Shown here in pieces: positions 9,001 through 28,018 of a stretch of DNA of 64,000 nucleotides. The stretch is taken from sequence record ON529851.1; one strand, 5' to 3'. The translations under genes were made by a program, and so were the position numbers. Positions within the stretch are counted from its first letter, which is position 1. Each line of letters starts with the position of its first letter. The notes below the pieces were generated by a model. The model saw only the letters and a list, made by a program, of their open reading frames with translations, did no database searches and was not told the DNA's origin.

Positions 9001-9727
9001 ACCCGTCCTTCTTCTTGTCCTCGCGGTGGCGCGAGAGCATATCGACGAAGGTCCACACCGTCATGGCCTTGGGCGTCCACTTGACGGATTCGCGGTTGGC
9101 GCCGATGGAGACGGTCATCTCCTGCGCGTATCGCGGGTCGTCAAGCTGGAACGGGCTCAACAGCTTGGCGTCGTTCAGCGCGCCGTGGTCTTCCTCTTCC
9201 CACGGCAGGGCGTAGCCTTCAGTCTGGACGGCCGGGGTGTCGATCAGGATTTCGGGCGCCGGCGGCGCGTCCTCGACGTAGACCTCGGCCAGTTGGGCGA
9301 AGGTGACGTAGTGTTCGGGGTCGAGGTGGACGACTTCCCAGCCGTTGGCGCCGGGGGTCGGCACGGGATCGGTCAGATAGCCCGCCATCGCATCCGCGAT
9401 GGCCGTCACCTCCGGCGTGACCTGGACCGCCGCGTCCAGGGCGTAGGCGCAGATCAGCAGGCCGTCCTTGAACAGGACCGCCGTCGGCTTGACGACGTCG
9501 TCCTGCCACTGGTCGGGCTGGGCGTTCTCGGTATAGGAGTAGAGGAACGGCACATCGCCGTTGGCGGTCACCGGGTCCAGGTAGAGCGGCTCGGCGCCGG
9601 CGGCGGCCACGGCCGCCTCCAGGGATTCGGGGGTGGTGATTTCTGCGGTGACGTCACCGTAGATCAGGCGAAACGCGTCTTCGGTTGCGCTGACCAGCGC
9701 CGACAGGAATTCGTTCAGGGCTGCCAT
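6071..9727 (-). CDS. large primase-like / P-loop replication protein
   Basis: 1218 aa; Zn-finger-like CPFDEDH...CQHDSC; C-terminal P-loop-like KPTPGTGGT and LFFDD Walker B. Confidence 0.7.
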   Translation of the reverse strand: MAALNEFLSALVSATEDAFRLIYGDVTAEITTPESLEAAVAAAGAEPLYLDPVTANGDVPFLYSYTENAQPDQWQDDVVKPTAVLFKDGLLICAYALDAAVQVTPEVTAIADAMAGYLTDPVPTPGANGWEVVHLDPEHYVTFAQLAEVYVEDAPPAPEILIDTPAVQTEGYALPWEEEDHGALNDAKLLSPFQLDDPRYAQEMTVSIGANRESVKWTPKAMTVWTFVDMLSRHREDKKKDGLAFVLAEIVGNQRRKAAVKACYGVGLDIDVGVSGAVIDEALVKLGKLAVRYTTHSHAKTSTKMLKDRIAKWCKKHDIAEGVTQQSIERFLREEPTMRWDESIIKTVEYVDDVHDPEGFMVQLDHIPMPKHRIVLPLTEPFVPTAVAKTHDEGMKMWGEVCHALAKALGDLPLDRSAVDPSRLFYFPRHAANRPFEARIVGGDLLDWKSLELAQGGADDAPTGDALLDLVLNEVKATDKSKPKSKSTTEEGRDLGRWSIKAAGGFQIVDLIKDHADDRIRTNGAHKIDIECPFDEDHSDPGNPEDKGCFAVNAGDGPSEIFTIKCQHDSCSQRTNLDFLGKMLKDDWFDRDTIDDPTYNALLEEGSEGLSPEGEKIKVEDDAREVYEKLVDGLTEDSSEEDVDDCLRAVIEANLPTRRSIQIEAKIRKALKLSQPNVTKLLKSARAEISRAKNEKGSIKDPKGREVFEYESSYNFDEAFDACFRTLTMTNKKDKEPTFSCVQTDPVRLNRNAKTGRISFDVLNEAAMRSEMNKRMTFMRRSEKGDGTREAIPKEVGEYVYQQCYNELPQSPEIIYTPLFTADGDLVMTPGYKADLNILMANINFTVAVPQSPTWAEVEEAVAFLREEVLIDFPFLDYDTNGTERRDPSEANALAMIITPFMRRMINGCTPVFFVSKPTPGTGGTLLGKLPMLLFDGQESAPMRYTQNEEEMQKSLLSAIIETRSHLFFDDVKEFNNRALLQSITAQEIGGRMLGKTANISRPNLFNWIGTGNNPIVLSEMERRIVWVRLNGKTVDIQTRVFRHKDFTDFLNSNRSKIVGYILTMIQYWIDLEKPMFEERKRASFEDWSRKVGGVLQACGIEGFLDNRASAIADMDETAIRAFVKEWIKKYGFNKVLTGDLFNHAYGMEMDIIEGNNDDQKKRMFQKKMHNLDGRAFRIDNLDYLVRSGLSEEGDPMFFLQRVEQYLEEQPQPDPLAA

Positions 9728-22433: not shown

Positions 22434-23672
22434 GTGAGCACCTTTGCTGTTCCGATCCTCGCGATCGACGACGTCTACGATCACCCCAACGCTGATCGAC
22501 TCTCCATCATCCGTATTCGCGGCTACGAAGCCGTCGCCGGCAAGGCCGAGGACGGCTCGCACCGCTTCGCCAAGGGCGAACGCATCATCTACGTGCCCGA
22601 GGGCGCGGTGGTGCCGGACCAGCACCTGAAGGAGCGCGGCTACTGGAACGAGGCCAAGGGCGTCGGGCTGCTGGCGGGCACAAAGGGCAACCGCGTCAAG
22701 GCCATCACCCTGCGCGGCGTGCTGAGCCAAGGCCTGGTCTGGAAGACCGAACCCCTCACGGGGGCGAAGGTCAAGGATCGCGTGACCGGAGACATCGTGA
22801 CCCAGGTGAACCCTGAGAAACCCGCTCTGGCGATCGCCACGGCTGAAGACGGCACGCAGACGGCGGTGATGGTCGATTTCGGCGACGACGTCGCCGACTT
22901 CTTCGGCATCACCAAGTACGATCCGCCCATCCCGCCGGGCCTGGACGGCGACGTCTTCGGTCTGTTCGAGGCGATGTTCAACTACGACATCGAGAACGCC
23001 AAGGCCTTCCCGAACCTGTTCACCGAGGACGACATCGTCACGGTGACGGAGAAGCTGCACGGCACCTTCTGCCGGATGACCTACATGCCCGGCATCGAAC
23101 CGCGCGAGGACCTGTTCGGCGACGGCCGCGTGGCGATCACCTCCAAGGGCCTGGGCGCCGACGGCCTGGTGTTCAAGAACACCGCCTTCAACCGCCAGAA
23201 GAACGTCTACGTCCGTAACATGCTGCCGCTGGTGGACCACTTCGTCTCGGCCTGCAACCAGGACGCCAAGGGCCTGACGGTCCACCTGATGGGCGAGGTT
23301 TACGGCGCCGGCGTGCAGGACCTGAAGTACGGCCGTACCGAGGATCAGGGCTTCGCCGCCTTCGACGTCTGGATCGAGAAGTCTGGCTTCCTGGCCGAGA
23401 TCGAGAAGGAGTACGCCTGCATCGCCTTCGGGGTGGAGCGGGTGCCGGTGTTGTTCGAGGGCTTCTACGACAAGGGCCTGATCGAGGACTTCGCCAAGGG
23501 CGACACTACGATCGACGGCGCCGAGAACATCCGCGAGGGCGTCGTCGTGACCCTGACCGGCGAGCAGGACAAACGCCCTGACGGCAACGGCCTGGGCGGA
23601 ACCCTGCGCCCGATCTGCAAGGTCGTGTCGGAAGCCTACCTGACCCGCAAGGGCGGGACCGAACTGCAATAG
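22434..23672 (+). CDS. ATP-dependent RNA ligase (DRB0094/Rnl2-like, N-terminal OB-like domain)
   Basis: TEKLHGT (KxHG), GEVYG, FAAFDV, REGVVV, KVVSEAYL; N-terminal HPNADRL. Confidence 0.9.
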   Translation: MSTFAVPILAIDDVYDHPNADRLSIIRIRGYEAVAGKAEDGSHRFAKGERIIYVPEGAVVPDQHLKERGYWNEAKGVGLLAGTKGNRVKAITLRGVLSQGLVWKTEPLTGAKVKDRVTGDIVTQVNPEKPALAIATAEDGTQTAVMVDFGDDVADFFGITKYDPPIPPGLDGDVFGLFEAMFNYDIENAKAFPNLFTEDDIVTVTEKLHGTFCRMTYMPGIEPREDLFGDGRVAITSKGLGADGLVFKNTAFNRQKNVYVRNMLPLVDHFVSACNQDAKGLTVHLMGEVYGAGVQDLKYGRTEDQGFAAFDVWIEKSGFLAEIEKEYACIAFGVERVPVLFEGFYDKGLIEDFAKGDTTIDGAENIREGVVVTLTGEQDKRPDGNGLGGTLRPICKVVSEAYLTRKGGTELQ

Positions 23673-24035: not shown

Positions 24036-25970
24036 GTGGCCCACATCGACTATGAGAACAACCTGTTCCTCGGACGGGGCACGTTCGAGGAACGGGAAAT
24101 CTTCCGTGACGTCCTGGGCAAGTTCCAAGGCTTCACCTTCTCGAAGGAATACGGCTGCTGGGTGACCGGCGACGTCCACATGGCCCAGGCGGTCAAGGGC
24201 GTCGTCTGGACCGACCGGGCCATGGGGCGGCTCAACACCCTGCTGGAAGCCGCCAAGATCAGTGAAGAACTGTCCTGGCGGGCTGACACGTCCTATGTGC
24301 CGCCGTCGCCGCCAGGGTTGAGTTATCTCCCCTACCAGCGCGCCGGGATCGAATACGCGTTGATGCGAAAGGACACCCTTATTGCCGATCAGCCTGGTTT
24401 GGGCAAAACTATACAGGCCATCGGTGTATTGAATGCTGATGAGACGATCAACTCTGCTCTATTCATCGTCCCCGCATCTCTAAAGATCAATTGGCACCGA
24501 GAGATCGACAAGTGGATGCTGCCCAACCTGACCTTCGGCATCGCCGAGGCCAAGCGGATCGACAAGGAGTTGATCGGCTACGCCAAGGCCTATGAACAGG
24601 TCGAGGACGGCGTCTACAAGTCCGGCCCCAAGGCCGGGCAGCCGAAATTCAAGAAGGTCGAGGTCCAGGGCAAGCCCAAGTATCGCAACGTCGAGACGTC
24701 GGACTACTGGCCCGACACCGACATCGTCATCATCAACTACGACATCCTGGAACGCTTCGCGGTCCAGATCAAGGAACGCAACTGGGACCTCCTGGTCTGC
24801 GACGAGTGCCATGCGCTCAAGAGCGCCGCGACGGGGCGCACCCTGTTCGTCCTCGGCGGCAAGCAGGAGTTCAACAAGACCCAGCGCGACAAGCGCAAGG
24901 CCGAGGGCCTGTCGACGCGCCCCGTCTGGCACCGCGCCATCGACGCCAGCCGCCGCGTCTTCCTGTCAGGCACGCCGATGATGTCGCGCCCGATCGAGTT
25001 GTGGCCGGTGGCGCACGCCTTCAACCCCTCCGGCCTGGGCCGGGACTACAACGACTTCGCCTACCGCTACTGCGCCGCCTGGACGACCGCCTACGGCCTG
25101 GACGTCTCGGGCGCCTCGAACCTGGAGGAACTGGGCCAGAAGGCGCGCGCCAGCTTCATGGTGCGCCGGCTGAAGCGCGAAGTGCTGCCGGAACTGCCGC
25201 CCAAGCGCCGGATCGTGGTCACGCTGGACAGCCCGGAAATCCGTGACCTGGTCGCCCGTGAGGACGAACTGGCCCAGGCGCTGCGACTCTATGAGAACGT
25301 CACCCTCAACAAGGGCGCGGTGGTCGACGAGATCAACCACGGCATCCAGATCGTCAACCACATGACGCGGATGGGGATGACGGACGAGTTCGATCCGGAC
25401 AACCCGAACTGGCGCTCCCTCGATCTGGATTACGCCGCCTCCGTCGCCGGCCTGGAGCCGCCGGCCGTCGCCATCCTGTTCGAGGAGATGGCGAAGGTGC
25501 GCCGCGACCTCGGGCTCGCCAAGCTGAGCGCGCTCAAGCCGTGGATGGACGACTTCCTGGAGGGCGGCGAGAAGCTGCTGATGTTCGCCTACCACTCCGA
25601 CGTGGTCAAGGCGCTGGCGTTGGCGGCCGAGAAGTGGAACCCGGCGGTGATCTGGGGCGGCACGCCGCTGCACAAGCGCCAGGGCGAGGTCGACAAGCTG
25701 CAAGGCGACGAAAGCTGTCGCCTGTTCATCGGCAACATCCAGGCGGCCGGCGTCGGCTTCACCATGACGCGCGCCCATGACGTCGCCTTCGCCGAGGGCG
25801 ACTGGGTGCCCAGCCAGATCGAACAGTGCGAGGACCGCGCCTGCCGCATCGGCCAGACGGCCGAGAAGATCAACAGCTACTTCCTGGTCGCGAACGGCTC
25901 GCTGGATTCCCGCATCGCCCAGGCCGCCAAGGCCAAGGAAGACAACATCAACCTGGCGATGGGCGCGTGA
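24036..25970 (+). CDS. SNF2/HARP-like SF2 helicase
   Basis: ADQPGLGKT, VCDECH, LSGTP, MVRRLK, GVGFTM, QCEDRACRIGQ. Confidence 0.92.
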   Translation: MAHIDYENNLFLGRGTFEEREIFRDVLGKFQGFTFSKEYGCWVTGDVHMAQAVKGVVWTDRAMGRLNTLLEAAKISEELSWRADTSYVPPSPPGLSYLPYQRAGIEYALMRKDTLIADQPGLGKTIQAIGVLNADETINSALFIVPASLKINWHREIDKWMLPNLTFGIAEAKRIDKELIGYAKAYEQVEDGVYKSGPKAGQPKFKKVEVQGKPKYRNVETSDYWPDTDIVIINYDILERFAVQIKERNWDLLVCDECHALKSAATGRTLFVLGGKQEFNKTQRDKRKAEGLSTRPVWHRAIDASRRVFLSGTPMMSRPIELWPVAHAFNPSGLGRDYNDFAYRYCAAWTTAYGLDVSGASNLEELGQKARASFMVRRLKREVLPELPPKRRIVVTLDSPEIRDLVAREDELAQALRLYENVTLNKGAVVDEINHGIQIVNHMTRMGMTDEFDPDNPNWRSLDLDYAASVAGLEPPAVAILFEEMAKVRRDLGLAKLSALKPWMDDFLEGGEKLLMFAYHSDVVKALALAAEKWNPAVIWGGTPLHKRQGEVDKLQGDESCRLFIGNIQAAGVGFTMTRAHDVAFAEGDWVPSQIEQCEDRACRIGQTAEKINSYFLVANGSLDSRIAQAAKAKEDNINLAMGA

Positions 25971-27250: not shown

Positions 27251-27620
27251 CCAGTTCCGACGGCAGTGCGCCGGCTGGTACTCAACGGACTCCTCCGCCG
27301 ACCCTGCGCCAGGAACCATGGCGGACGCAGGATCAAGACGAAGGCGTTGCTTTACACCCACCTTGGACGTCGGACCCGTCGGGCCGACGAAACTTTGACC
27401 AGGGGTTATGGGACGAGTAATCCCGCCCTCTGGCCCGGCGGACTACTAGGCCTGCCCTTGCCTGGGCTCCCCCAGACGTCCGGCACGACTTTTGGTCAAC
27501 CAACCTTTACTCACGAAGACGGACGTAGCACCCGGCGTGGATCGGAACTGGTAGGCCCCTCTCCTGAACGGGCCGCCGTGCTCTGGCGGTGGTCCGTCGT
27601 CATCGCCGCCGGCGTCCGCC
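27251..27620 (-). ncRNA. candidate structured ncRNA between tmRNA and tRNA-Met
   Basis: no credible ORF; 10-bp closing helix 27542-27551/27251-27260; flanked by RNA genes. Confidence 0.4.
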
Positions 27621-27629
27621 TGCGAGAGT

Positions 27630-27971
27630 AAAGTGGGGAACTTTCTGTTCCAAGGCCCGGCAAGCCGGGGTTCCCCATACCCGTGGTCGCCCTTAGGCGG
27701 CCAGGAGGACTCGTTCGCCAGCGGCGAAGTTGTCGTTGTGTGCTTCGACAGTTGTCAAAGTTGGATCGTGAGCAGCCCGAAGACCACCATGCAGACCCTA
27801 GCACTCGCCATTCAATCCCGTCACCAACGTCAATCGATACTGTTCGGCCCCTCAAACCGCGCCCGTCTCCCATTATAGGAGGGGGATTGGTGGAGCCGAC
27901 GGGATTCGCACCCGTGTCTTGCCCGTCTGTTTCGTTCTCTCTGCTTCGGTCCGGAGACCTCCGCGCGACGA
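27630..27971 (-). ncRNA. ssrA: two-piece (circularly permuted) tmRNA, alphaproteobacterial type
   Basis: acceptor piece ends GACACGGGTGCGAATCCCGTCGGCTCCACCA (CCA 27888-27890); 36-nt spacer; coding piece starts GGGGCCG at 27851 (G3:U70, A73); tag frame 27743-27693 AHNDNFAAGERVLLAA*. Confidence 0.93.
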
Positions 27972-27977
27972 AATGCC

Positions 27978-28018
27978 TGTATACAGAGTCCGTTTCTGAG
28001 TGTCAAGCATTACGTCAA
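27978..28018 (-). promoter_or_regulatory. tmRNA promoter
   Basis: TTGACGTAATGC-TTGACA-17 nt-TATACA. Confidence 0.75.

Follow-up and report, generated by a model that had tools for sequence, protein, structure and literature searches.

Does a jumbo phage whose genome was reported to lack a transfer-messenger RNA (tmRNA) carry one after all? The question is raised by a 389-nt region (positions 27630–28018) of a 64,000-nt stretch of sequence record ON529851.1, hereafter the window, in which an initial annotation, made from the letters of the sequence, placed a permuted tmRNA encoded by the phage, in two pieces as in alphaproteobacteria and with its own promoter. A sequence search returned a 100% match to Brevundimonas phage vB_BpoS-Marchewka (ON529851.1), a member of the Dolichocephalovirinae with a genome of 348,421 bp and B. 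pondensis LVF1 as its host; six sister phages align to the region at 92.6–99.5% identity. The locus is without any annotated feature in all seven GenBank records. In the study that described the Marchewka genome, ARAGORN was run for tRNAs and tmRNAs, and no tmRNA is reported as detectable (PMC10070969). A table note in that paper states that no isolate has a tmRNA, yet the record of Brevundimonas phage Bajun from the same study (ON529858.1) already annotates one (BAJUN_03120). The sequence evidence assembled below indicates that the tmRNA gene of Marchewka is real: it is conserved, circularly permuted (two-piece) and overlooked in the published annotation.

The Rfam model of permuted tmRNAs (tmRNA_permuted, RF04321) matches positions 27950–27693 with 57.2 bits (cut-off 47, E = 1.7e-8); here and below, tmRNA coordinates are window positions on the minus strand. 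The order of the parts displays the circular permutation: the tRNA-like domain has its 3′ half first and its 5′ half further downstream, with an unconstrained spacer in between. The pieces named in the initial annotation were all found in place (Table 1): an acceptor piece of ~84 nt ending in ACCA, its length following from a 5′ end set near 27971 by the position of the promoter; an intervening segment of 36 nt, a length that is free to vary among phages; and a coding piece starting with GGGGCCG, which pairs with CGGCUCC and places G 27849 opposite U 27894 as the G3:U70 pair. The assignment of the whole gene in the initial annotation is supported by the RF04321 match, by full-length homology to the ssrA genes of Caulobacterales and by conservation in seven phages.

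The proposed promoter, TTGACA-17-TATACA at 28006–27978, is also present. It is the sole match to this pattern in the window even at one mismatch, with 0.00 matches expected from shuffled sequences, and its hexamers are conserved in the seven phages, among which 9 of the 17 spacer columns vary. Bajun and Caulobacter phages CcrPW and phiCbK likewise have a TTGACA −35 hexamer ahead of the tmRNA; at the equivalent position, one Brevundimonas genome has TTGGAA-17-TATATT before its ssrA gene. A generic promoter scan missed the phage promoter because it demands T at the last −10 position. A TATAAT within the spacer-hairpin loop (27877–27872) was considered as a second promoter and rejected, since it lacks a −35 partner and its sequence in three relatives is TATGAT.

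Conservation distinguishes the predicted mature RNAs from the spacer

The seven phages were aligned, and differences between the Marchewka and Kikimora clades were counted by segment. The −35 and −10 hexamers are identical at 5/6 and 6/6 positions, respectively, and the 17-nt promoter spacer at only 9/17. Identity is high in the acceptor piece (84/90), the 5′ part of the coding piece (93/102), the tag (54/57) and the 3′ part of the coding piece (61/61), so that the mature parts are 91–100% identical overall. The intervening segment, by contrast, has 36 nt in Marchewka and, through a 90-nt indel, 126 nt in Kikimora and Gurke, with differences at 21 of the 36 aligned positions; it is essentially unalignable between conserved flanks, and its length in other permuted tmRNA genes ranges from 16 to 196 nt. 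Conservation falls off immediately past the CACU that ends at 27632, with 4 changes in the following 14 nt. This pattern, read from the alignment, is what a promoter followed by two mature RNAs, with a discarded spacer between them, would be expected to show, and it indicates purifying selection on both halves of the RNA and not on the spacer.

In two hairpins of the mature parts, the changes leave pairing intact. The 5′ hairpin of the acceptor piece changes from GGUC-UCCG-GACC to GGAC-UUCG-GUCC, and the changes in a UUCG-capped hairpin of the PK1 (pseudoknot 1) region consist solely of G-C to G-U steps and one inserted pair. Among 167 permuted genes parsed from the retrieved loci, T-stem pairs 1–2 covary (four different standard pairs among relatives, 31 distinct stem sets), as do acceptor pairs 5–6. 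A conserved AACAGAA loop near the 3′ end, which is closed by GGGAAC/GUUCCC in Marchewka, is closed by a perfect 6-bp helix in 137 of the 150 permuted genes with the loop, with 38 different helix sequences. The inner P2 helix is likewise present and covarying, with a double compensatory change: CCG/CGG in hosts and Bajun is CAA/UUG in Marchewka, CcrPW and phiCbK, and it is accompanied by GACGG/ACGUU.

Homology to host ssrA and relatives in other phages

To find host counterparts, one genome per bacterial species was scanned for CTCCACCA, a spacer, GGGG, a second spacer and then AACGACAACTTCGC. The scan gave 76 loci, all but two of which are alphaproteobacterial ssrA genes; the Caulobacterales among them comprise one Brevundimonas genome, several Phenylobacterium and one unclassified member of the order. 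A T loop of the UGCGAUU type and the acceptor strand CGGCUCC are common to Caulobacterales ssrA and the phage gene, whereas other alphaproteobacteria have GGCAGUA and CGCCUCC in their place. The phage gene aligns with Caulobacterales ssrA over its whole length, from the promoter through the 3′ AACAGAA element ending in CACU. The Brevundimonas ssrA gene scores 198.7 bits with the alpha_tmRNA model (RF01849) and 123.8 bits with tmRNA_permuted. For this chromosomal tmRNA (L129:428–1191), ARAGORN reports an over-long gene and an implausible tag, GGNDGRAPAPVLGPGRRA, whereas the NDNFA frame and the Rfam alignment yield ANDNFAGDVALAA. Here, too, ARAGORN thus shows signs of being unreliable when a permuted tmRNA is GC-rich.

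A short query made from the tRNA-like domain matches CcrPW, phiCbK, many phiCbK-like phages and Bajun. RF04321 scores 90.4 bits in CcrPW, 87.9 in Bajun and 71.4 in phiCbK, and the gene order (tRNA-Cys)/tmRNA/tRNA-Met/tRNA-Met is common to these three phages and Marchewka. The initial annotation had proposed capture from an alphaproteobacterial host followed by divergence. Because the locus order is shared across phages, the gene is an old syntenic feature of the phage subfamily, not a recent or Marchewka-specific capture. Maximum-likelihood analysis of 48 tRNA-like domain sequences over 115 columns gave a tree with long branches and weak support, which resolves neither phage monophyly nor the attachment to hosts; for this reason we make no phylogenetic claim.

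The tag reading frame and its resume codon

The frame GCA CAC AAC GAC AAC UUC … GCC GCC UAA described in the initial annotation is present, with GCA at 27743–27741, and its translation and stop codon stand. Its start at that first GCA probably does not: translation most likely resumes at GUC (27749–27747), two codons upstream, because the upstream context there aligns with those of hosts and related phages. Host genes read AACU/GCG (followed by AAC GAC) or AAAU/GCG, and the Rfam consensus is UAAAU/GCA; phiCbK, Bajun and CcrPW read AAAU/GUC, and Marchewka reads ACAACU/GUC GAA GCA CAC AAC GAC. For these three relatives of Marchewka, the tags called by ARAGORN likewise begin with V.

Read from GUC, the encoded tag is VEAHNDNFAAGERVLLAA; four sister phages have S in place of the H (VEAS…). 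The frame ends in LLAA-UAA, and its NDNFA core is identical to that of the Caulobacterales tags (ANDNFAGDVALAA and ANDNFAEEVRLAA). For the relatives CcrPW, Bajun and phiCbK, the ARAGORN tags are VNDNDAPVMEQRLAA, VAANDNAPFAVREAIAA and VAANDNDVVAFASAREAIAA. Among the seven phages, codons three and four are the only ones to vary. Between the resume codon and NDN, CcrPW has no inserted codons, phiCbK and Bajun have two and Marchewka has three; the tag has 18 codons in Marchewka versus 12–13 in Caulobacterales genomes. Despite these differing lengths, the four phage lineages keep the tag in frame, with the NDN core and an AA-stop end.

Function and alternative explanations

Alanyl-tRNA synthetase (AlaRS) recognises G3:U70, SmpB and EF-Tu act in the delivery of tmRNA to ribosomes, and ClpXP recognises an LAA end. 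A functional RNA would be transcribed from the gene’s own sigma-70-like promoter, and host tRNA-processing enzymes would excise the spacer to leave an acceptor RNA of ~84 nt and a coding RNA of ~220 nt, held together by the acceptor stem and inner P2; such a scheme of two-piece maturation has been described (PMC11915505, PMC9004378). Host AlaRS would charge the RNA with alanine via G3:U70, and host SmpB and EF-Tu would bring it to ribosomes stalled on broken mRNAs, where translation would resume on the tag frame, probably at GUC. Tagged peptides would end …NDNFAAGERVLLAA, and the NDNF core and LAA end of the tag would direct the product to host ClpXP for degradation. We can only guess at the benefit to the phage, which may be ribosome rescue sustained during infection amid heavy mRNA breakdown, diverted host RNA synthesis and possibly falling levels of host tmRNA.

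The initial annotation had seen no smpB gene in the window, and a wider search agrees. With E. coli SmpB as the query, tblastn found 68 hits among all 50,697 phage records; the organism names listed include neither Brevundimonas nor Caulobacter, although three minor names were not displayed and a very divergent phage SmpB may have been overlooked. With no smpB homologue found in these phages, use of host SmpB is the simplest inference.

Several observations weigh against our interpretation of the locus as a functional tmRNA gene. ARAGORN does not recognise it: on the window, the program called three flanking tRNAs and no tmRNA, and its search for permuted tmRNAs called none in the Marchewka window or in Kikimora, with tmRNA* calls obtained for Bajun, CcrPW, phiCbK and one host genome. 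The initial annotation had named ARAGORN and an Rfam alpha_tmRNA search as checks; RF04321 exceeds its cut-off, but the full alpha_tmRNA model does not (48 versus 50 bits, compared with 198.7 for the host gene); the RF01849 match covers the tRNA-like domain only (model positions 73–180, E = 2e-12). No outer P2 helices, which are present in phiCbK and CcrPW, are evident. In the Rfam alignment these helices are flagged as unpaired, no canonical helix emerged when the two pieces were co-folded or submitted to duplex prediction, and the predicted pairings are inconsistent between Marchewka and Kikimora; candidate pairings of the acceptor-piece 5′ end with the tag or the 3′ trailer, checked by eye, were rejected as they are not kept in Kikimora. 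The host-type hairpin after the tag has no evident counterpart in the Marchewka gene, and no pseudoknot could be assigned with confidence in the PK1 region. The resume codon (GUC versus GCA) is assigned by homology alone, and the covariation is drawn mainly from distant relatives, since the larger part of the RNA does not vary within the clade. The ARAGORN miss and the low model scores probably stem from the missing post-tag hairpin and the lack of a recognisable outer P2, together with the enlarged PK1 region, which is ~25 nt longer than in hosts owing to the UUCG-loop hairpin, the pairing of which is kept across phages.

Taking both sides into account, we consider it probable, as far as sequence can tell, that this is a functional phage-carried ssrA gene of the circularly permuted alphaproteobacterial type that performs trans-translation. 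The RNA could instead be an SmpB decoy, which would bind host SmpB, and perhaps AlaRS and EF-Tu, and thereby block or out-compete host trans-translation, as proposed for the tRNA-like-domain-only tmRNA of mycobacteriophage DS6A. The tRNA-like domain is indeed the best-conserved and best-scoring part of the Marchewka gene, outer P2 and PK1 look degenerate relative to hosts, and a molecule consisting of that domain only is reported to be a strong tmRNA inhibitor (PMC4131195, PMC11915505). However, a decoy would need neither a tag frame nor a 3′ element. The frame is nearly invariant in the seven phages (54–57 of 57 positions), four divergent lineages keep it open with its NDN core and AA-stop through changes in length, and the post-tag 3′ element is 100% conserved, with a helix that covaries across the family. 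We therefore regard a decoy as unlikely. The conserved tag frame and 3′ element also make it extremely improbable that the gene is a passenger or relic, that is, a piece of host ssrA acquired through imprecise excision, or retained as an attachment site, and functionless in the phage. Although tmRNA genes often serve as integration sites and prophages are known to carry fragments of ssrA (PMC9004378, PMC11915505), the Marchewka gene is complete, with both halves, promoter and tag, and is not a 3′ fragment; its gene order is kept across phage genera that have strongly diverged in sequence, and selection distinguishes the mature parts from the spacer.

The tag itself allows a further reading, in which rescue occurs but an altered tag changes the fate of the protein through a different adaptor or protease or through amino-acid recycling. 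The valine start, the three extra residues before NDNF, the GERVLLAA end and a length of 18 codons, with an insertion before NDN that is lineage specific, are all compatible with such retargeting, and recycling of host proteins has been suggested for phage Melnitz (PMC9004378). Against this, both the NDNF core and the C-terminal LAA, the parts that the host recognises, are retained, and we think retargeting improbable. Trans-translation with the conventional fate of the tagged product thus remains our preferred reading.

Features of the locus and its neighbourhood

Table 1. Window coordinates of the tmRNA gene, its parts and neighbouring features, written 5′ to 3′ on the strand indicated.
Feature	Position	Strand	Description	Basis
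Whole tmRNA locus including promoter	28006–27632	−		Sequence
−35 hexamer	28006–28001	−	TTGACA	Sequence; TTGAC invariant in seven phages, spacer varying
−10 hexamer	27983–27978	−	TATACA, 17 nt after −35	Invariant in seven phages
Acceptor piece	27971–27888	−	~84 nt	Rfam alignment; 5′ end from promoter
Acceptor-piece 5′ hairpin	27959–27956 / 27951–27948	−	GGUC/GACC	Pairing kept between clades
Purine-rich segment of acceptor piece		−		
Inner P2 strand, acceptor side	27927–27923, 27921–27919	−	GACGG, CAA	
T arm	27915–27899	−	5-bp stem ACGGG/CCCGU, 7-nt loop UGCGAAU	
Acceptor 3′ strand	27898–27892	−	CGGCUCC	
A73 and CCA	27891, 27890–27888	−	ACCA (27891–27888), encoded	
Acceptor stem	27851–27845 / 27898–27892	−	GGGGCCG/CGGCUCC, 7 pairs, tRNA-Ala-like	
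Intervening segment	27887–27852	−	36 nt, predicted to be removed from precursor	
Coding piece	27851–27632	−	~220 nt	Rfam alignment; full-length alignment to Caulobacterales ssrA
Acceptor 5′ strand	27851–27845	−	GGGGCCG, G3 at 27849	
D-loop analogue	27844–27834	−		
Inner P2 strand, coding side	27833–27831, 27830–27826	−	UUG, ACGUU	
UUCG hairpin of expanded PK1 region	27788–27771	−		
Tag frame	27749–27693	−	18 codons; stop UAA 27695–27693	Translation and homology
3′ element	27676–27632	−	Ends ACU 27634–27632	Aligns with 3′ end of alpha_tmRNA, as in host gene
3′ element closing helix	27676–27670 / 27641–27635	−	GGGGAAC/GUUCCCC	
Hairpin within 3′ element	27669–27656	−	CCCGG-CUUG-CCGGG	
Conserved loop in 3′ element	27649–27642	−	AACAGAAA	
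Candidate structured RNA	27625–27390	−	~235 nt, unannotated	RNAalifold consensus
tRNA-Cys(GCA)	28113–28027	−	87 nt	
tRNA-Met(CAU)	26931–26845	−	87 nt	
RNA ligase	22434–23672	+	PF09414, PHA02142 OB-fold domain	
SNF2-type helicase	24036–25970	+		
Ro60-like protein	31740–30355	−	Annotated as ‘RNA-binding protein’	Pfam TROVE, 2.6e-12; vWA domain
YrlA match	32413–32301	−	Full length, weak	32.6 bits, cut-off 69, E = 0.0034

The tmRNA gene is followed immediately by an unannotated stretch of ~235 nt that is highly conserved in the seven Brevundimonas giant phages. Its RNAalifold consensus structure has −98 kcal/mol and 72 pairs, with nine one-sided changes, one two-sided change and few broken pairs. 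The stretch matches no Rfam family and has no counterpart at the CcrPW, phiCbK and Bajun loci. An open reading frame on the plus strand (27266–27631) was rejected as the cause of this conservation; it has no Pfam match, and the 1-nt indels between clades argue against coding. We propose the stretch as a candidate new structured RNA.

Long variable arms are normally confined to Leu, Ser, Tyr and selenocysteine tRNAs. The tRNA-Cys(GCA) and one tRNA-Met(CAU) of the cluster are 87 nt in length and have long, stem-forming variable arms, with U as the discriminator and an encoded CCA; the same odd tRNAs are found in CcrPW and phiCbK. Because an RNA ligase and an SNF2-type helicase flank the tRNA/tmRNA cluster, genes for RNA repair and RNA quality control are grouped at the locus. 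Further along, the product annotated as ‘RNA-binding protein’ is Ro60-like, and the weak match to the Y RNA-like family YrlA lies beside its gene, on the same strand, in an unannotated gap of ~1 kb. The two are likely to form a phage Ro/Y RNA pair. Just upstream of the tmRNA locus of phiCbK we observed a GOLLD RNA (L206:179–665, minus strand; 165.3 bits, cut-off 150) that encloses a tRNA-Gly gene and does not figure in the annotation returned for this part of the genome. Bajun has a weaker GOLLD match (L204:227–645, minus strand; 104 bits), and no GOLLD match was found anywhere in the 64-kb Marchewka window.

These neighbours invite a broader proposal, which we offer tentatively and think rather unlikely: that the tmRNA is no plain copy but a remodelled phage version, with a valine resume codon, a tag lengthened at its N terminus, an enlarged PK1 and a reduced P2; that it shares an RNA operon with the ~235-nt RNA and the class-II-shaped tRNA-Cys and tRNA-Met; and that these, with the RNA ligase, the Ro60-like protein and the candidate Y RNA, make up a phage-run island for RNA and translation quality control. 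If it exists, such an island would alter the handling of stalled host ribosomes and their products during infection.

Comparison with known tmRNAs

No new kind of system is revealed by these results. They correct the record for seven published jumbo-phage genomes, and they indicate that annotation based on ARAGORN undercounts permuted phage tmRNAs, which the newer Rfam model detects. The tmRNA gene emerges as a stable syntenic part of the phiCbK-like subfamily, with tRNA genes, an RNA ligase and the Ro60-like protein nearby, and phiCbK-like phages with Caulobacter or Brevundimonas laboratory hosts lend themselves to studies of how a ribosome-rescue RNA of its own may benefit a phage.

Compared with Caulobacterales ssrA (RF01849), the phage gene has the same gene order, promoter position, 5′ hairpin, T arm and D-loop analogue. 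Inner P2 is alike down to a non-canonical G·A pair and a bulge, as are the acceptor stem GGGGCCG/CGGCUCC, the NDNFA core and the 3′ AACAGAA element. With RF01849 the host gene scores 198.7 bits and the phage gene, over part of the model, 48 bits; host tags have 12–13 residues and start with alanine (GCG), hosts have a post-tag hairpin and clear outer P2 helices, and the phage gene sits in the genome of a lytic jumbo phage.

More distant parallels are found in other phages. The Bxz1-group mycobacteriophages, with one-piece tmRNAs, and DS6A also carry a component of trans-translation without a phage smpB (PMC4131195), but their RNAs are not permuted, and the tRNA-like-domain-only RNA of DS6A lacks a tag frame. 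The two-piece tmRNAs of marine phages (OM43 phage Melnitz and pelagimyophages) and of uncultured viral contigs share with Marchewka the permuted design, the T loop UGCGAAU, the purine-rich acceptor segment GAAGCA(A/G)AGAGAA and tags of the ANDxxxALAA type, but are AT-rich, with short tags that start with alanine. Among 120 uncultured viral contigs retrieved with the T-loop and acceptor motif, the GGGG strand lies downstream of CCA, marking them as permuted, in at least 91, nearly all of which have tags of the ANDxxx…LAA type. The Melnitz tmRNA gene contains a glutamine riboswitch (PMC9004378); Rfam scans gave none at the Marchewka tmRNA locus. In one AT-rich viral contig of ~335 kb (IMGVR_UViG_3300028394_002328, L086), a permuted tmRNA around position 9581 has a tag containing ANDEVFSLAA and inner P2 strands, AGACGGGCAAGAC and CGAUUGACG, that are identical to those of Marchewka. 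This contig may be a distant giant-phage relative, or the identity may reflect convergence.

The closest known systems are the tmRNAs of phiCbK, CcrPW and Bajun, which belong to the same subfamily and share the locus order, the TTGACA −35 hexamer, the T loop UGCGAWU, GUC at the resume position and the NDN…AA tag design. The Marchewka clade differs in its lower RF04321 score (57 versus 71–90 bits), in being invisible to ARAGORN, in its three extra codons (EAH or EAS) before NDN, in a PK1 region enlarged by the UUCG hairpin and in the conserved structured stretch of ~235 nt that follows the tmRNA and is missing from those relatives; nor does it show any evident counterpart of their outer P2 helices, which covary when phiCbK is compared with CcrPW. 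The genome paper of phiCbK does not mention a tmRNA, and phage entries are absent from the accessible part of the supplements of the tmRNA database paper. A survey has counted 402 phage genomes with a tmRNA, 53 of them two-piece, and its Table S1 marks phiCbK, Karma, Magneto, CcrSC, CcrBL9 and the genome corresponding to CcrPW as ‘Permuted’ (PMC9004378). Phage two-piece tmRNAs are thus already documented, including in this very subfamily, and what Marchewka adds is one overlooked and rather divergent instance, together with a corrected start of its tag.

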